Positions 6,604 through 57,967 of a DNA stretch of 64,000 bases are shown here, piece after piece. Numbering within the stretch: the first letter of the stretch is position 1; each line of letters starts with the position of its first letter. The notes under the pieces are model-generated. The model searched no databases. It saw only the letters and a program-made list of their open reading frames with translations, and was not told the origin of the DNA. Made by a program: the position numbers and the translations under genes. The DNA lies in the sequence record PP886230.1. The stretch is one strand, 5' to 3'.

Positions 6604-7536
6604 ATGCCAACTATTACACTAACAGTTGGATTACCTGGGTGTGGTAAAACCACATGGGCAGTTCAAGAAATTAAAAATGCCAAATCCAAGACTATCAACA
6701 TCAACCGTGATGATATTCGTGAATCTATGGCTGGGTCACATGATGCTTACAAATTCAACGATGCTAATGAGCAGTACGTAACTAATTTACAGTTCAGTGC
6801 AGCAAATTCAGCAGCAGAGAATGGTTGGAACATCATCATATCCGATACAAACCTTAAACAACATTTCCGTAATCTCTGGAAAGTATGGGCTAAAGATAAT
6901 GGTTATGATTACAAAGAAAAGAACTTCTATGATGATTTTGTACCTAATGAAGACCGTGGTGCAGATGTTCATGAATTCTTTAAGATTAAAGAGTTCGTAA
7001 AACTTTGTAAGAAATATAACCTCCAGCGTGAGCGTTCAGTACAAGATGATATCATTGACACAATGGCAGATACGTACTATTATAGTAAGGCATTGCACAT
7101 TGGTTACTATGGTAATTCACGAGAAGCTGCTATTATCGTTGATATTGACGGTACTCTTGCTCATAAATGGGGTCGTAATCCTTACGATGAAAGTACTGTT
7201 CTTCAGGATACACCTGATGAAGAAGTTATTTTGTCTATTATCGCTGAAGCAGTTTTTCATAAACGCAAGATTATCGTCATGAGTGGGCGTACTGAAGGGT
7301 GTCGTGCTGATACCGAACAGTGGCTTAAGAATTGGGGTGTTCCTTACGATGCATTGTTTATGCGAGATATCGATGATAAACGTCCTGATGATGTTGTAAA
7401 ATTCGACCTGTACATGAAAAATGTGGTTGATCATTACGATGTTAAAAAGGTATATGATGACCGAGCACAAGTCGTATTCATGTGGCGTAAGCTACTTGGC
7501 TTGAAAGTTTTTCAAGTTGCAGAAGGAAATTTCTAA
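6604..7536 (+). CDS. pseT: Polynucleotide 5'-kinase/3'-phosphatase (T4 PseT-like)
   Basis: N-terminal P-loop GLPGCGKT and INRDDIRE; HAD motif DIDGT; YDDRAQVVFMWR; 310 aa. Confidence 0.95.
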   Translation: MPTITLTVGLPGCGKTTWAVQEIKNAKSKTININRDDIRESMAGSHDAYKFNDANEQYVTNLQFSAANSAAENGWNIIISDTNLKQHFRNLWKVWAKDNGYDYKEKNFYDDFVPNEDRGADVHEFFKIKEFVKLCKKYNLQRERSVQDDIIDTMADTYYYSKALHIGYYGNSREAAIIVDIDGTLAHKWGRNPYDESTVLQDTPDEEVILSIIAEAVFHKRKIIVMSGRTEGCRADTEQWLKNWGVPYDALFMRDIDDKRPDDVVKFDLYMKNVVDHYDVKKVYDDRAQVVFMWRKLLGLKVFQVAEGNF

Positions 7537-31781: not shown

Positions 31782-33587
31782 ATGCAATTAGATAAATTAT
31801 ATACTGACGTAACGAATTTCCTCAATCAGAGCAATACTGATCTTACCAACGAAAATGCGAACAAAGATGCGAAATGCGTCAATACACACAGGGATTTACT
31901 TGCAGGTATCCTATCTAAGCATTATTCACAAGATGTTATTCCAAATGAGCTAATGCAGTGGCATAATGATGGTTATGGTCATATTCATGATTTAGACTAC
32001 TATATCAGCCCATTAACCAACTGTTGCTTAGTTAACTACCCAGATATGCTAAAAAATGGATTTACCATTGGTTGTGCCAAAATTGAAGAACCAAAGAGTT
32101 TTAGTGTAGCATGTACAGTACTGACACAGATTGTACAAGCTGTAGCTAGTTCCCAATACGGCGGTCAATCGTTGGCTCACATTGATGTCGGTTTAGAACC
32201 TTACGTTCAAAAGTCATGGGATAAGCTGTTAGAAAAACAAAAGAAATATAATCTAAGTGATGAGTTCATTGAAGAAGAATTACGAAAAGAAGTATACGAT
32301 GGATGTCAAACATTACTTTACCAGACTAATTCAATGATTAGCACTAATGGACAAGCTGCATTCATTTCTCTTAGTTTAGGGCTTAATACTTCTAAATTTG
32401 GTAAATTAATCACTGAACAGTACTTAAAAGTTCATGAGAATGGTTTAGGTAAAGATAAGATTACTCCAGTGTTTCCTAAAGTAATTTTCTTTTTACAAGA
32501 TGGTATAAACATGAATACCAATGATAGTAATTATGACCTTAAACAGTTAGCTATGCGTTGTGCATCAAAACGAATCTACCCAGACTTTGTTTCAGTTCCA
32601 TTAAATCACAAAGTGACGGGAAGTAGTAGTACTGCTGTAACACCGATGGGATGTCGTTCATTCTTAGGAAAATGGGAAGATTCAAATGGAAATGAACAAT
32701 ACAACGGTCGTTTCAATTTAGGTGTGGTTTCTATCAATTTACCTCTAATTGCTCTTGAGAGTGATTCTGATGGAGAGTTTTTTGATAAGATAGACGAGCA
32801 TATGAATATTGCATATCGTGCTCAGATGAACCGTGTGGAGCGTTTAAAAGGCACTAAAGCGAAGCAGAATCCAATTTTGTTCATGGAAGGTGCATTAGCA
32901 CGTTTAGGTGCAGAAGAAACCATTGACAAGCTATTTTACAATGGTTATGCTAGTATTAGTATTGGTTATGTTGGTCTTGTTGAATGTTCAGAAATCCTCA
33001 CTGGTTCTATCAGTAAGGAGTTTTGTATGTCAGTACTGAATTATATGAAAGTAAAATGTGATGAGTTCAAAAAAGAAAGTAATATTGCTTTTAGTCTATA
33101 TGGAACTCCAGCAGAGTCGCTTTGTTATAAATTTGCACGTTGCATTGAAGCAAAATATCCTTCAGTACTAAAACGTGATTACATCACAAATTCCTTCCAT
33201 CAACCAGTATGGGTAGAAAGTTCTCCATTTGATAAATGGAGTTATGAAGAAGGGTTTGCTTACCTAAGTAACGGTGGAAACATCAGTTATGTTGAATCTC
33301 CAAACTTAGCAAACAACATTCAAGCACTTGAAACATTAGTTAACTATGCGTACACTAAGATACCATATTTTGGTATTAACCAACCAGTTGACCATTGTTA
33401 TGAATGTGGATTCCAGGGTGAGTTCAGTGTAGATAAACATGGTTTCCACTGTCCTGTATGTGATAATCGTAATGAGAAGACAATCTCAGTGATTCGTCGT
33501 GTTTCTGGGTACTTGGGTAATCCTTCTTCGCGTGGCTTCAATAAAGGCAAGCAACAAGAGTGTTGTGAGCGTATTCAGCACAAATAA
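31782..33587 (+). CDS. nrdD: Anaerobic (class III) ribonucleotide reductase large subunit, without ATP cone
   Basis: ENANKD, HIHDLDY, TNCCL, TPMGCRS, GRFNLGVVSINLP, CxxC-CxxC Zn site and glycyl-radical loop RRVSGYL; start ATG 31782 after AAGGA. Confidence 0.96.
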   Translation: MQLDKLYTDVTNFLNQSNTDLTNENANKDAKCVNTHRDLLAGILSKHYSQDVIPNELMQWHNDGYGHIHDLDYYISPLTNCCLVNYPDMLKNGFTIGCAKIEEPKSFSVACTVLTQIVQAVASSQYGGQSLAHIDVGLEPYVQKSWDKLLEKQKKYNLSDEFIEEELRKEVYDGCQTLLYQTNSMISTNGQAAFISLSLGLNTSKFGKLITEQYLKVHENGLGKDKITPVFPKVIFFLQDGINMNTNDSNYDLKQLAMRCASKRIYPDFVSVPLNHKVTGSSSTAVTPMGCRSFLGKWEDSNGNEQYNGRFNLGVVSINLPLIALESDSDGEFFDKIDEHMNIAYRAQMNRVERLKGTKAKQNPILFMEGALARLGAEETIDKLFYNGYASISIGYVGLVECSEILTGSISKEFCMSVLNYMKVKCDEFKKESNIAFSLYGTPAESLCYKFARCIEAKYPSVLKRDYITNSFHQPVWVESSPFDKWSYEEGFAYLSNGGNISYVESPNLANNIQALETLVNYAYTKIPYFGINQPVDHCYECGFQGEFSVDKHGFHCPVCDNRNEKTISVIRRVSGYLGNPSSRGFNKGKQQECCERIQHK

Positions 33588-33595
33588 GGTAAATT

Positions 33596-33928
33596 ATGGA
33601 TTTAAAGCCAATTGTGGTTAACAAATACAAAGAACCGTATGATGTGTATATTGGACGTGGGTCTAAATGGGGAAACCCATTTACCCATATTAAAGATAAA
33701 CAAACCAAAGCCGAGTTCATTGTTAGTACAAGAGAAGAATCAATTGAAAAATTCAGAGAATACATTATTGAACGTATTTCTTGTGGAGAAGTTAAGATTG
33801 ATGAATTACTTGAACTCGCAGGGAAACGCCTTGGTTGTTTCTGTAAACCAAAATCATGTCACGGCGATGTTCTTGTCGAAATAGTGAGTGCAATATTAGA
33901 TGAATTACCAGACGATAATCAAGGATGA
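33596..33928 (+). CDS. DUF4326-family protein
   Basis: YDVYIGRGSKWGNPF...LGCFCKPKSCHGDVL. Confidence 0.8.
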   Translation: MDLKPIVVNKYKEPYDVYIGRGSKWGNPFTHIKDKQTKAEFIVSTREESIEKFREYIIERISCGEVKIDELLELAGKRLGCFCKPKSCHGDVLVEIVSAILDELPDDNQG

Positions 33929-48207: not shown

Positions 48208-48512
48208 AAAAATTATTAGTTCCGTTTATTTCTTTTTTAATTATAAGTGGATGTGCCGAACAAGTAAAACTACAATCCCCTGCACCAATTAAACAAGAAA
48301 TTCTGTTAGAAAGATGTGATGATGATACACCTCTACCACAAAAAATTATGATTGACAAAAATGGTTTTAAAGGTTATGATGGTGCAGAAATTCTTAAAGT
48401 ACTTACTCGTTGGGATGCAGTCTACAATGAATGTGCTTTAAAACACGACGCATTGATTAAAACTATTCGTGATTTACAAGGTAAAGATATTAAAATCAAT
48501 ATCAAGGAATAA
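48204..48512 (+). CDS. Outer-membrane spanin lipoprotein (Rz1-like)
   Basis: Lipobox ISGC; LERCDDDTPLP; YNECALKHDALI; ATGA overlap with the i-spanin. Confidence 0.7.
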   Translation: MKKLLVPFISFLIISGCAEQVKLQSPAPIKQEILLERCDDDTPLPQKIMIDKNGFKGYDGAEILKVLTRWDAVYNECALKHDALIKTIRDLQGKDIKINIKE

Positions 48513-48513
48513 A

Positions 48514-49125
48514 ATGAACAAATATCATGTTTACTATACGACAAAATTATCACTTCTTGAAGAATTAAATCAACGAAGTACTAAGATGAAACGCTACACT
48601 TTAAATGGTATTACTTTTCGATATTTCCCACAAAAAGTTCTTACTTTTGTTAAGAATCCAAAATGCGTGGCATGTGGGATTGAAGCTACTGAAGTACGCA
48701 TTGAACGTTCATTATGTTCTGATCCAGTATATGGTAAACCACATTTAAATGTATATGCTGTATGTGGTCTTTATGAAGTTTTAATGACAGTTGACCATAA
48801 TCATCTGGCATCTAAGGGTGGACCTGATTTAGAGTCAAACTTTAATACTATGTGCTCCAGATGTAATCAACTACGTTCGAATAAAACTGAAACAGTTGAT
48901 GAGTTTCTTGAGAAAGTTAAAGGTCGTAATCTTCTCCAAGAACATATGAATAATTTCTTTAATGTACAAAAAAAGAAAAATAACATTGACAAGTCGAAAC
49001 TACTAGAAGAACGTAGGTTACGTCAAGAATTATGGGAAACTGATCATCTATGGCATGTTCGAGAGTTTGGTCGTCATATGAAAGCTTTGAAAAAAGAACA
49101 GAAGAAATTGAATAAACATGATTGA
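48514..49125 (+). CDS. HNH endonuclease-domain protein
   Basis: CVACG; MTVDH...SKGG...NFNTMCSRCN. Confidence 0.75.
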   Translation: MNKYHVYYTTKLSLLEELNQRSTKMKRYTLNGITFRYFPQKVLTFVKNPKCVACGIEATEVRIERSLCSDPVYGKPHLNVYAVCGLYEVLMTVDHNHLASKGGPDLESNFNTMCSRCNQLRSNKTETVDEFLEKVKGRNLLQEHMNNFFNVQKKKNNIDKSKLLEERRLRQELWETDHLWHVREFGRHMKALKKEQKKLNKHD

Positions 49126-49178: not shown

Positions 49179-49535
49179 ATGAAATCTAAAATCTTTTTAC
49201 CACAATTAATGTGGCATCTAGCAGAGTTAGATGAAAATGATGAATATACGGACTATGGTGCATGGGATGACAGTACTGAAACTTTTAAACCAGATGTAAA
49301 ATATAAAATCATCTGCAATGAAAGCAAAGGACACAAAAGGTGGACTGAAGAATTTGATCTCGTATTTCTTGACATGAGCACAAATAAGTTTTATCATTGT
49401 ACTTATGAACGAGGTTTAACAGAAGATAGACCAGTACAACCATTCAGTACTGAAACTGATGGTGTTAAGTGCAATGAAGTTTCTGTTACCAGAGAAGAAA
49501 TTATCACTTATCGAACTTTGTGGAAATATTTGTAA
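49179..49535 (+). CDS. Hypothetical protein
   Basis: GGAG SD. Confidence 0.6.
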   Translation: MKSKIFLPQLMWHLAELDENDEYTDYGAWDDSTETFKPDVKYKIICNESKGHKRWTEEFDLVFLDMSTNKFYHCTYERGLTEDRPVQPFSTETDGVKCNEVSVTREEIITYRTLWKYL

Positions 49536-49536
49536 A

Positions 49537-49935
49537 ATGCTTAAAGAATTAGATTTTTCAAACTTAGAAATTATCAGTGCTGTAAAAAACATTTCCGATA
49601 TGGGAGATGAGAAAGCAGTTCTTGTTACTATTACTTTTGTAAAAGAAAAAGATAGCTATAGCCATTTAACTGGTATTGAAGAACTAATTCATAAAACCAA
49701 TCTTGAGAATGATGGTAAACTCATCAAGCTTCAGGCTTCATATACGCAAAAAACGTCAAATTTTATAGACCTAAATAATGTAGTCAAGGTGGTATACAAT
49801 CATCCTGAACACACATATAGGAACACGACAAGAAATGAAAATGTTGCTAACGATTCGAATATTATCGAAGATGTTGAATTCATAAACACAATTTTTGATC
49901 GTTGTTCTAAGGATTTAAAAAAAGTATACATGTAA
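49537..49935 (+). CDS. Hypothetical protein
   Basis: ATG 49537 just after the upstream stop. Confidence 0.55.
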   Translation: MLKELDFSNLEIISAVKNISDMGDEKAVLVTITFVKEKDSYSHLTGIEELIHKTNLENDGKLIKLQASYTQKTSNFIDLNNVVKVVYNHPEHTYRNTTRNENVANDSNIIEDVEFINTIFDRCSKDLKKVYM

Positions 49936-49964
49936 TGGGACATTATATGTTCCAATGATATAAT
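49936..49964 (+). promoter_or_regulatory. GGGAC-class promoter
   Basis: TGGGAC-17-TATAAT with TGA extension; also an imperfect TGGGACA/TGTTCCA hairpin. Confidence 0.7.
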
Positions 49965-50241
49965 GTATATAGAAAATGACAACGGACATTGAAAAATGGA
50001 CACTGAGAACCTACTTCTCTTGAAAATGTAAAGGATAGATGAGCTTTACCGTTGTAGCGAACAGCAGAAGAAACCTGTTAGAGTACTGGCATTCAAACAA
50101 ACACGATGTAAGACCACGAATCACGGCGACACGGCTGTATAAAGAACTCCGATAAGCATACAGAGAGTTCCTAGATAGATGTATAAGGTTCGCACCTTAC
50201 CAGATTTGCTAAGGGAGTTCAAGGATAGCGGACGCAATTTT

Positions 50242-50423
50242 TACAAGAAAGTTGCGTCCAAAATTTGAGAACAAGTACTACTTTGATCGAATAGAGTTAG
50301 TACTGAGTGCTGTTGATGAAAAGACCAGCGACCGTTGCATATGACTGCGATAGAGAGAAACCGAGCAACCCGCTTTCGCTCTCTAAATTTTGGTACAAGA
50401 AAGATCCGTCCAAAATTTGAGAA
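50242..50423 (+). repeat. 30-nt direct repeat (2 copies, 28/30 identical)
   Basis: TACAAGAAAGTTGCGTCCAAAATTTGAGAA (50242-50271) and TACAAGAAAGATCCGTCCAAAATTTGAGAA (50394-50423). Confidence 0.9.
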
Positions 50424-50462
50424 ATTCGCAATTCGATAATATCCGATGCCATCATCGTCAAG

Positions 50463-50485
50463 AGAGACTTAATTGTCTCTTTTTT
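50463..50485 (+). terminator. Rho-independent terminator
   Basis: AGAGAC-TTAATT-GTCTCT-T5. Confidence 0.7.
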
Positions 50486-50625
50486 ATTACCTTCATTCCC
50501 CTGCGGGGGGATGTAATAGTCCTCAACAAATCCCGTCAAGTTTTTAAAGTACATTATCATTTTCAGAAGGAACTAGTTTACGAAGTAAACGCAGTGACTT
50601 CTTGAGTTACGAGAGAACGAAGTGA

Positions 50626-51054
50626 ATGAGTAACCCAACGAAAATATCCGATAAATCCGAATTAACACAAATGTTATTCAAAGAATATTTTGAGTTTCAG
50701 ATAAAAGACGAACATCAATTACCACAGCAATATTTGAAAAGAATTAAAGATCCGTCAGTAATTACTAAAGAAACTAATTTTTATAATAGTATTTTGGATT
50801 TCGTTAAATCAGTTCATACAACAAGACCTATTGTAGTTTTGTTTTTTGATAAATCTATTCCTTTAGTAGTTCCTGAAAATGTATTTTTTATTTCAGAAAC
50901 TGATTTAAATAATCAAAGTACTGTAAGTAGATTAAGAAATTGCTTACTTGTAGTATGTGATTCTTCTTTGTATAATAACAGAATACTATGGGATAGAAGT
51001 AAACGCAATGCAGTTTCTGAAATGAATCCTGAAATTACCTTTATTATTAACTAA
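50626..51054 (+). CDS. Hypothetical protein
   Basis: 142-aa ORF; weak SD. Confidence 0.6.
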   Translation: MSNPTKISDKSELTQMLFKEYFEFQIKDEHQLPQQYLKRIKDPSVITKETNFYNSILDFVKSVHTTRPIVVLFFDKSIPLVVPENVFFISETDLNNQSTVSRLRNCLLVVCDSSLYNNRILWDRSKRNAVSEMNPEITFIIN

Positions 51055-57040: not shown

Positions 57041-57967
57041 TTGAAACAAGCGAAAAAAGCACTGAAAACTAAGACTACTTATGGTGTTCTAGTTTGCACA
57101 GTACTTGTCGCTGCGATTGGATTTTATGGTTTTTCTCAAAATGATCGTGTATCATCATCGGACGAAAGTCAGGTACACAATTTAAAACCACAAGTTACGC
57201 AAATTCAAAAGCAGGAATTACCAAAGGTAGAAATATCAAAGGATGTTCCACGCGGCGAGAAGCATTATACGGTTCAACCTGGTGATAGTTATTATTCTAT
57301 TGCTAAAAAGTTTAAACCTAAAAATGTACAACTTGAAGAGTATGTTATTTTGTTGAAAAATATCAATTTAAATGCTACTCTTCATACTTCTCAGGGTATC
57401 TTTATCCCAACAAAAGAGGATTTGAAGAACGTATTGTTACCAGATGTGACTGTACTGTTTGATTATAATGATCCAGAAATTGTCAATCACATCAAAGAAG
57501 CTGAAGGTTCAATTGAATTTCAGTCCAAGAACAAACGCCGTTTACTTGGTGGGAAAGTCGGAGTTCCTTTCCACAATTCTAAATTTCATCCCTACAAGGA
57601 CATGAAAGGTAATTATACAATAGGTTATGGGCATTATTTGGGTAGAAAAGAATCTGATGCAATTAAGTACAGAAACGGTATTACCAAAGCTCAAGCCAAT
57701 AAACTTTTAATGCAAGATATGAAAAGAACATATAATGACTTTTTATTATTGATGCAGAAAAAAGAAGCAGTAAATCTGACCAAAGAACAACAACGTATTC
57801 TTTATGAAATGTCCTATACAATGGGTGTTGATAAATTAGCAACGTTTAATAAACTTTGGAAAAGTGTGAAAAATGATAACCCTAAGAAATTTAAAAAAGA
57901 AATTATGAATTCCTTATGGTATCGTCAAGTTACAAACCGAGCAGATTTGTTGTTAAGTTCACTCTAA
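57041..57967 (+). CDS. Membrane-anchored LysM + T4-type lysozyme (GH24-like)
   Basis: TTG start after a perfect AGGAGG; N-terminal TM; LysM HYTVQPGDSYYSIAKKF; IKEAEG...YKDMKGNYTIGYGH; SLWYRQVTNRA. Confidence 0.85.
   Translation: MKQAKKALKTKTTYGVLVCTVLVAAIGFYGFSQNDRVSSSDESQVHNLKPQVTQIQKQELPKVEISKDVPRGEKHYTVQPGDSYYSIAKKFKPKNVQLEEYVILLKNINLNATLHTSQGIFIPTKEDLKNVLLPDVTVLFDYNDPEIVNHIKEAEGSIEFQSKNKRRLLGGKVGVPFHNSKFHPYKDMKGNYTIGYGHYLGRKESDAIKYRNGITKAQANKLLMQDMKRTYNDFLLLMQKKEAVNLTKEQQRILYEMSYTMGVDKLATFNKLWKSVKNDNPKKFKKEIMNSLWYRQVTNRADLLLSSL

Follow-up and report, generated by a model that had tools for sequence, protein, structure and literature searches.

The genome of phage vB_EcoM_E9.1 (PP886230.1), an Asteriusvirus-type jumbo phage of the PBECO4/121Q group, contains a non-coding region that is very probably a real feature, namely the gene for a large structured non-coding RNA (ncRNA) encoded on the + strand; this judgement concerns the identity of the region and draws on its sequence and that of its relatives. 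We studied the locus within a 64,000-nucleotide stretch of the record, here called the window, and positions refer to the window unless stated otherwise (record position = window position + 62,000). The region occupies 49936–50625, between an upstream open reading frame (ORF) at 49459–49935, which corresponds to DUF7325 and is annotated as 'structural protein' in 121Q, and a downstream ORF at 50626–51054. An initial annotation of this DNA had proposed a structured, undescribed phage ncRNA at this site. That proposal is supported by the non-coding character of the region, by covariation in the + sense, by a conserved promoter, and by the finding that neither a family of Rfam 15 nor a published paper corresponds to it.

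We collected 74 distinct full-length copies of the region from RaK2-like jumbo phages, viral contigs and metagenomes, and the region is non-coding in all of them. In the window, the three + strand frames between 49971 and 50545 hold 7, 10 and 15 stop codons and the longest open stretch spans 53 amino acids (aa), which agrees with the earlier statement that no credible + strand ORF is present. The higher GC content noticed at the same time is likewise evident, at 0.41 in the region versus about 0.30 in the flanks. In GenBank, some records show nothing in the gap, and others annotate as many as four ORFs of 29–62 aa there. Four such 'hypothetical proteins' are annotated over 50039–50605 (PP886230.1 CDS0278–0281; OR699181.1 WPK18238–18241), and the 121Q and A4 records place a 50-aa ORF on the opposite strand of the RNA region. 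A protein gene in decay, or several tiny genes as these annotations would have it, can hardly be entertained: in the family alignment no reading frame is conserved and column variability lacks a 3-nt periodicity, the length of 81% of the pairwise indels among copies is not divisible by 3, and the conservation is accounted for by compensatory base changes. Furthermore, the neighbouring genes are less well conserved than the region (in the fEgEco12 group the element is 95.6% identical and the surrounding 1.7 kb 90.4%). The small ORFs annotated on the RNA region are almost certainly not genes.

The family is widespread among relatives of E9.1. By blastn the region is found in 72 phage records, with 95–100% identity among Asteriusviruses, and its RaK2-like carriers include Asteriusvirus, Mimasvirus, Eneladusvirus, Alcyoneusvirus and relatives. 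Identity is about 70% in Cronobacter GAP32, Pectobacterium CBB, Yersinia fHe-Yen9-04, Serratia BF, the Erwinia SNUABM phages, Salmonella Munch/7t3 and others, and a 49-nt core is 86% identical in Klebsiella RaK2/K64-1. In all these phages the copies lie within ORF-poor gaps of 0.7–0.9 kb. An nhmmer profile built from 12 copies matches every further copy from end to end. Further copies were obtained by pattern scans of IMG/VR and metagenomes; a looser two-anchor pattern was applied to viral contigs, and among the matches listed 8 of the 113 new loci were real. A 23-nt core pattern run against 185,579 bacterial and archaeal genomes gave 17 matches in unrelated metagenome-assembled genomes, all of them chance hits in which nhmmer aligned only the pattern itself; about 35 were expected by estimate. 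The family appears confined to RaK2-like jumbo phages of Enterobacterales plus bacterial islands.

Within a phage genome the element is present in three to five paralogous copies at syntenic sites, and clustering of the flanking genes separates these sites into five locus types. Sequence identity is 0.71–0.78 within a locus type and 0.60–0.67 between types, which places the duplications before the divergence of the phage genera. E9.1 itself carries three copies, of type I (57,305–57,908), type IV (the window copy, from 111936) and type II (190,713–191,297; all record positions). The type I copy lies 4 kb outside the window, and neither a pattern search with 3 mismatches nor a filter-free model search found a second copy inside it. 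One metagenomic jumbo contig holds five copies. Neighbouring genes are unrelated between locus types, and a comparison of flanking genes across loci found no protein gene that is consistently adjacent to the copies. Type II copies face a convergent gene, whereas the genes that follow copies of the other four types (I, III, IV and V), and those that follow island copies, run in the same direction as the RNA. RaK2 has two copies, one of which comes immediately after a gene for a phage sigma factor (L013 221–1117, RaK2 ORF244; Pfam Sigma70 regions 2 and 3). No similarity to this sigma factor could be detected in the gene that precedes type I copies in other genera.

The helices of the family covary far beyond chance, and they do so only in the + sense. 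We scanned all column pairs of a sequence-only MAFFT alignment of 38 copies for helices of at least three stacked pairs with at least 85% canonical pairing. Twelve helices had 8 or more extra pair types, and these equal or exceed the maximum (8 extra pair types) reached in 40 column permutations, which gave a mean of 0.125 such helices; the same helices were recovered with 74 copies. With 30 copies, RNAalifold showed compensatory changes at 32 of 59 predicted pairs. For the conserved core we built a covariance model, R1, on alignment A4; it retrieved 70 copies, and tests were made on 62 distinct rows. In this core alignment 97.9% of cells are paired, versus 38–51% when the partners are slid by 1–3 columns, 16 of the 21 pairs have compensatory (double) changes, and there are 255 double-change cells versus 11–34 in the slid controls, values that none of 500 shuffles reached. 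R1 scores 95.7 bits at the window core and has no other match in the window. The R1 alignment of the core was fitted to the model, whereas the MAFFT-based tests were not, and the long-range pseudoknots rest on custom covariation scripts. Covariation across relatives, which the initial annotation had named as a check, is found both in the scan and in the core.

Folding energy cannot assign the strand, since both strands fold about equally well: a 515-nt stretch has z = −3.45 against shuffles and its opposite strand z = −3.37 (both about −3.4). The sense is instead fixed by the wobble pairs. Well-aligned helices contain 259 G-U and 16 A-C pairs, which establishes the + strand and argues for RNA rather than duplex DNA.

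The fold supported by the family consists of several domains, all on the + strand. The 5′ domain (49979–50058) is closed by H1 (49979–85/50049–55), the ACAACGG/CCGTTGT stem recognized from the single sequence, which is 91% paired with 15–16 extra pair types. It holds a variable hairpin (49987–98), a covarying hairpin (50016–21/50031–36) with the conserved loop GAAAAYGUA, and an invariant GAUGAG (50038–43). Helix H3 (50043–45/50056–58) encloses the 3′ strand of H1 and thereby forms pseudoknot 1; it is 100% paired, with UA/CG/AU exchange. The next domain (50061–50138) is organized by H4 (50061–65/50134–38; 98% paired, 8–10 extra pair types). Its inner helix CCUG/CACGG (50074–77/50122–25) is nearly invariant in the 30-copy alignment and 54% paired at these coordinates in the 38-copy alignment, and an optional insert (50084–50118) is present in 34 of the 74 copies. 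The third domain (50144–50217) contains the best-supported helix of all, H5 (GAACT/AGTTC, 50144–48/50166–70), with 16–18 extra pair types and 96% pairing, as well as an invariant CUAAGGGAG (50209–17), within which 50211–16 forms a block of at least 90% identity across the 74 copies. The TAAGGT/ACCTTA hairpin in this domain (50184–99), also proposed previously, is conserved by eye, but only 64% paired in the MAFFT alignment.

Downstream of these domains, an optional module can occupy either of two sites. At site 1 (50218–50270) it comprises a 12–13-bp hairpin (50230–59; −18.2 kcal/mol, z = −7.3) and the motif CGUCCAAAAUUUGAGA, closed by 50218–20/50268–70; site 2 (50384–418) is enclosed by H13. 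The module is found at site 1 in 47 of the 74 copies and at site 1 or site 2 in 68. A 30-nt direct repeat (50242–50271 and 50394–50423) is the part shared by both modules, and these two dispersed repeats are the only ones in the region, which has no tandem repeats. The choice of site follows the locus type, with both sites filled in type IV and island copies. Alternative placement of this kind is characteristic of peripheral elements that make contacts or serve in binding. The 12-bp hairpin and the pairing AAATTTTGG/CCAAAATTT of the initial annotation are upheld by covariation, as optional modules.

Between site 1 and the core stands hairpin H9 (50274–50304), the former AGTACTA hairpin, whose two stems (50274–77/50301–04 and 50280–85/50292–97) covary with 13 and 14 extra pair types. 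Its loop AUCGAAU (50286–92) pairs over 7 bp with 50431–37 to form pseudoknot 2, in which 258 of 259 cells are paired and the 9–12 extra pair types lie above every permutation. The conserved core (50305–50440) comprises H10 (50308–12/50326–30), the invariant joining strand GACCGUUGCAUAUGAC (50330–45), H11 (50346–50/50426–30), H12 (GAGAG/CTTTC, 50353–57/50373–77) with a conserved 15-nt loop (50358–72), H13 (50380–83/50419–22) and the 3′ strand of pseudoknot 2. It is followed by a linker (50441–50459) that stands out in the conservation map (...CCGAUG.CAUCAUCGUCA) and to which no covariation could be assigned. Judged by these alignments, about half of the stems drawn originally find no support in the family. 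The crossed pairs CTGTAT/ATACAG and GAACTCC/GGAGTTC, once taken for a pseudoknot, as well as TAGAGAG/CTCTCTA, ACATT/AATGT, GAGAA/TTCTC, TAAAG/CTTTA and AACAG/CTGTT, are 37–61% paired across the 38 copies; in their place the family supports H5, H12 and the two pseudoknots described above.

Where would this RNA begin and end? A sigma-70-type promoter (49936–49964, + strand) consists of a −35-like TGGGAC(A) at 49936–42, a TG at 49956–57 and TATAAT at 49959–64; counted as GGGACA, a 16-nt spacer and TATAAT with preceding TG (49937–49964), it matches at 10 of 12 positions. Across 30 aligned copies TATAAT does not vary and TG hardly does. No more than seven blocks of 6 nt or longer reach 90% identity in the set of 74 copies, and the promoter is among them, so that the promoter claimed at the outset is well founded as a conserved extended −10 site. 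Transcription is predicted to start near 49970. In type I copies (L010 ~1075–1115; also L011, L017, L016, L027, L015 and L026) the predicted RNA opens, right after the −10 element, with a strong hairpin and a T-run, which the window copy lacks and which may serve as a 5′ stabiliser, as an attenuator or as the terminator of the upstream gene.

At the other end, the terminator of the initial annotation corresponds to a hairpin followed by six U, here called T1 (50460–50485). Its 9-bp stem (50460–68/50475–83; −10.8 kcal/mol, z = −3.5) covaries with 10 extra pair types, although a simple terminator scan did not list it. T1 is an optional module: 37 of the 74 copies have it, every type I and type V copy lacks it, and the sequence behind it is still conserved. 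An invariant tail (50486–50545) contains a hairpin (50494–501/50506–13, pyrimidine-rich strand with G6; −13.8 kcal/mol, with 61 G-U and no A-C pairs), followed by ...CAACAAAUC.CGUCA up to 50538. The nhmmer profile matches the tail in all copies, its block 50506–13 is at least 90% identical in the 74 copies, and the most conserved stretch of the whole unit is this tail, outside the interval first delimited.

Conservation extends over some 110 nucleotides behind the tail, with two hairpins, in copies of types II and III and in one copy of type IV. The corresponding stretch of the window (50546–50634) is AT-rich, with hairpins at 50575–80/50584–89 (GAA loop) and 50606–10/50630–34; this module is weaker and degenerate in the window, where its single-sequence folding is not significant. 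In the paralogs, the stems of the module have compensating changes by eye and are borderline in a permutation test on 20 well-aligned copies. The start codon of the next ORF (142 aa) at 50626 and the purine-rich stretch that precedes it lie within the loop of the hairpin at 50606–50634, and the nucleotides of this hairpin are conserved in other locus types without a conserved peptide. Homology runs to about 50545 and more weakly to about 50634, and on this basis the unit reaches at least 60 nt beyond T1. Since T1 is optional and the most conserved stretch lies behind it, the 3′ end is not fixed at T1; the boundary drawn before is too short, and the length of about 520 nt proposed with it depends on a terminator missing from half of the copies. 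Candidate 3′ ends of the predicted transcript are ~50485, ~50545 and ~50634, which would give an RNA of about 515 to 670 nt, in round terms some 600 nt.

The position of T1 and of the next start codon raises the question whether the unit acts in cis. As a leader, it would stop transcription from the strong early promoter at the hairpin and U-run or further on until a phage factor or signal binds the pseudoknotted core, and island genes behind a copy would switch on only upon infection by such a phage. In the islands and in locus types I, III, IV and V, the succession of conserved core, terminator-like hairpin and co-oriented genes fits this arrangement, as does the start codon in the loop of a conserved hairpin; the unit always heads a + strand gene run, and several copies controlling several operons would be natural. 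However, type II copies have a convergent gene behind them, the hairpin with its U-run is lacking in every type I and type V copy, the downstream genes of different locus types fall into unrelated clusters, and some of them seem by eye to have an extended −10 promoter of their own. At 500–600 nt the unit is also several times larger than the leaders and riboswitches known to us. We consider a cis-acting leader quite unlikely.

Comparison with known RNAs did not identify a relative. Rfam 15 has no match in the 64-kb window at gathering score, only noise occurs in the region at E-values up to 10, and no Rfam family recurs across 12 diverse members. Specifically, the GOLLD, ROOL, OLE, HEARO and raiA models do not match, nor do the models of group I and II introns, RNase P and small self-cleaving ribozymes; flanking exons are not seen, and the neighbours differ between copies. 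ARAGORN found no tRNA or transfer-messenger RNA (tmRNA) gene in the window. The search against Rfam that had been suggested for the region thus matched no family for the window, the region or the 12 members, and the absence of tRNA, tmRNA, RNase P and intron hallmarks noted earlier holds up. Literature searches found neither a description of the RNA nor an RNA-seq study of an Asteriusvirus.

A ribozyme or the RNA of a mobile element (self-cleaving, intron-like or a recombinase guide RNA) could be suspected from the pseudoknotted core with its invariant joining strands and from the HNH, endonuclease VII and integrase genes that adjoin some loci. In the window, an HNH endonuclease ORF (48469–49125) stands two genes upstream of the RNA, and type II copies adjoin an endonuclease VII gene and an SbcC-like gene. 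Nonetheless, among the loci compared there is no consistent link between a nuclease and the RNA, and no protein gene of any kind is a constant neighbour. Even at E = 5–10, none of the 12 members matches an Rfam ribozyme, intron or transposon-associated RNA, neither a flanking exon nor a target duplication is seen, and copies stay at syntenic sites across genera, which is not the behaviour of a mobile element. This explanation is very improbable.

In its size class of roughly 500–800 nt, its many covarying helices and pseudoknots, its occurrence in phages and its lack of an assigned function, the RNA resembles GOLLD and ROOL. It differs from them in having no similarity to their Rfam models, in not standing beside tRNA genes (none occurs in the window), in its hosts (Enterobacterales jumbo phages, as opposed to Firmicutes or lake bacteria), and in being present as three to five syntenic paralogs per genome and also on integrative islands. 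GOLLD accumulates during lytic growth, according to a passage in PMC7567579. Transcribed ORF-free gaps of 0.2–0.8 kb, some of them with very strong expression, have been described in large virulent phages, namely the long non-coding RNAs (lncRNAs) lncRNA001–004 of PA5oct and an ~800-nt transcript of ICP1 that is its most abundant (PMC7318152, PMC7567579). These share with the present RNA the ORF-free setting in large virulent phages, and PA5oct is a distant relative of the RaK2 group; they are, however, defined by expression without structure, whereas our RNA is defined by structure and its transcript is predicted. When the regions of lncRNA001, 002 and 004 were considered as possible relatives, the core model found only noise in them.

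Full-length copies also occur in bacterial chromosomes. Two of 5,426 complete E. coli genomes carry one, LR-29-1 (Ecuador) and EEC_W5 (Bangladesh). The copy (L177 5843–6515; NZ_AP027515.1, about 3478950–3479620), in the same island as in L266 (NZ_CM130020.1), reaches 440 bits with the profile and 91 bits with R1; the phage copy closest to it has 74% identity. The island measures 10.7 kb, lies between ybaA and ffs, and contains a tyrosine integrase split by IS3, small genes without assignment, a resolvase and a candidate defence module of DuOB, DUF488 and mSLOG-DUF4326 (PADLOC PDC-M45). Its phage-homologous DNA runs from the promoter to the tail, and none of the island proteins proved to be related to the phage genes that flank copies. 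To judge from these boundaries, the islands would have taken exactly the promoter-to-tail stretch and nothing else from the phage, as expected of an autonomous transferable unit. A phage protein encoded elsewhere in the window (33584–33901) is 41% identical over 109 aa to the DUF4326 part of the island mSLOG-DUF4326 protein.

A second setting is found on at least seven metagenomic contigs, where the RNA unit follows immediately after a large serine recombinase gene, in the same orientation (L251 5153–7450; L238 2504–5687; also L209, L215, L218, L190 and L194). Small ORFs of 165, 186 and 118 aa are shared behind the RNA unit on these contigs, and the 118-aa ORF is common to the E. coli island and one of them. 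L251 also encodes a type II-A retron reverse transcriptase (1343–2272), and L238 has bacterial ABC transporter genes on the far side of the integrase. Taken together, the contigs resemble an integrative island family that may consist of jumbo-phage satellites. Across the islands, no structural or transfer gene was recognized, while a tyrosine or large serine recombinase and defence cargo are present; in this they agree with satellites, which are integrative elements without virion or transfer genes of their own. In a neighbour-joining tree without bootstrap, four of five island copies form one clade within the phage diversity and the fifth stands elsewhere among phage copies, and this nesting suggests capture from phage to island at least once.

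Jumbo-phage satellites, the Pseudomonas islands I23/I44/I55, were recognized in 2025 (PMC12595487, PMC12772148). Like the islands described here, they are small and integrative, adjoin a gene for a small RNA (tmRNA in Pseudomonas, ffs in E. coli), and have an integrase and defence cargo but no transfer genes; they differ in their bacteria and in the kind of jumbo phage concerned. When the main text of PMC12595487 was searched by term, no mention of a shared non-coding element came up. The presence of homologous RNAs on both sides of a phage–host conflict, together with the order of promoter, RNA, terminator and ORF, also recalls the RNA antitoxin ToxI and its phage-borne decoy pseudo-ToxI. Unlike type III toxin–antitoxin RNAs, the family has neither tandem repeats nor a conserved neighbouring gene that could be the toxin, and its tree, without bootstrap, suggests capture by the islands from the phage and not the reverse.

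The islands and the tail both bear on the idea of an RNA-primed replication origin, in which the transcript would form a persistent RNA–DNA hybrid at the tail, from which the T4-type replisome of the phage would begin DNA synthesis. Several copies would then be several origins of the 350-kb genome, and islands would copy an origin in order to be replicated by an infecting jumbo phage. Precedents are the T4 origins, several per genome and primed from promoter transcripts, and the structured ColE1 pre-primer RNA II, about 550 nt long. They share with our RNA that it is untranslated and promoter-driven, and the 3′ region of RNA II meets a specific DNA site. The copies do lie at conserved positions behind an invariant host-type promoter, and the strongest conservation falls in the tail behind the U-run, with an invariant G6 followed by AT-rich DNA. 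Moreover, islands without a recognisable replication protein carry the whole unit, and just downstream of it the E. coli island has closely spaced ATCGATCGTT-like repeats (L177 ~6900–6980) in a 700-nt non-coding stretch, which could be iterons of an origin. Yet the RNA is far more elaborate than these precedents, since two pseudoknots and many invariant loops across 470 nt exceed known primer needs, and in half of the copies (37/74) the hairpin and U-run between the RNA body and the candidate origin would release the transcript. The three copies of E9.1 lie within 134 kb of a roughly 350-kb genome and are not spread over it. GC skew has no turning point at the locus, which is not decisive for such phages. 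On balance, an origin seems somewhat unlikely.

How, then, might the RNA work? In the mechanism that we favour, host RNA polymerase would start at the extended −10 promoter near 49970, and the RNA would fold into a multi-domain structure with two pseudoknots, in which covarying stems hold invariant loops and joining strands. It would act as a stable, folded scaffold in trans, with its invariant single-stranded elements as a docking surface, most likely for a phage-encoded protein or nucleic acid. Several copies would provide dosage or partner variants, and islands would carry a copy either to tap into the interaction between the RNA and its partner or to disturb it. A stand-alone gene is favoured over a leader by the convergent gene behind type II copies and by the different neighbours of the locus types; for a scaffold acting in trans, the complexity of the fold and the lack of a constant adjacent gene argue as well. 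The RNA probably serves an important step of jumbo-phage biology. The protein sponge or anti-defence scaffold and the origin primer suggested at the outset are both still candidates, and the copies in bacterial islands have a bearing on each. The complete statement, a large ncRNA gene together with a trans-acting mode, is a reasonable possibility, although short of probable.

Several observations weigh against such a scaffold. The existence, ends and abundance of the transcript are deduced from DNA, and the element has neither a consistently adjacent gene nor a known partner. The most conserved 45 nt lie behind a hairpin and U-run in half of the copies, an odd arrangement for a stable RNA at its 3′ end, and the position of the tail would suit a role at the DNA level or during transcription, such as an origin or antitermination, at least as well. 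In addition, a trans-acting RNA would not usually be kept in three to five ancient copies, and the downstream genes are co-oriented in four of the five locus types and in the islands, as they would be behind a leader.

A scaffold, an origin and a leader have in common that each implies recognition by a phage factor, and in each case other elements would have reason to copy the unit. It is possible, if doubtful, that the RNA unit is a recognition module linking RaK2-like jumbo phages with a hitherto unnoticed family of small integrative defence islands in Enterobacterales, which would be candidate jumbo-phage satellites. The islands would then have copied an element that the phage machinery must recognise, be it an RNA-primed origin or an infection-responsive RNA switch. 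If true, a relationship between phage and satellite would here be mediated by a large structured RNA for the first time. How jumbo-phage satellites recognise their helper is an outstanding question, and a shared RNA or DNA element would make it directly testable.

In conclusion, the region belongs to an old and apparently undescribed RNA family with three to five diverged, syntenic copies per phage genome. Few large, intricate RNAs without an assigned function are known from bacteria and phages, chiefly GOLLD, ROOL, OLE and raiA, and each of them has led to new biology. Among such RNAs, we know of no precedent for three to five ancient paralogs at fixed sites or for capture by defence-carrying chromosomal islands. 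The family is unusually tractable, as it occurs in coliphages that can be grown on laboratory E. coli, offers more than 70 diverse sequences with clean covariation, and has a compact pseudoknotted core suited to probing or cryo-electron microscopy. Its recognition also corrects database annotation, since tiny 'hypothetical proteins' have been placed on the RNA in several GenBank records. Together, the paralogs and the capture by islands suggest that this RNA stands at a control point of jumbo-phage development that is exploited by other elements.

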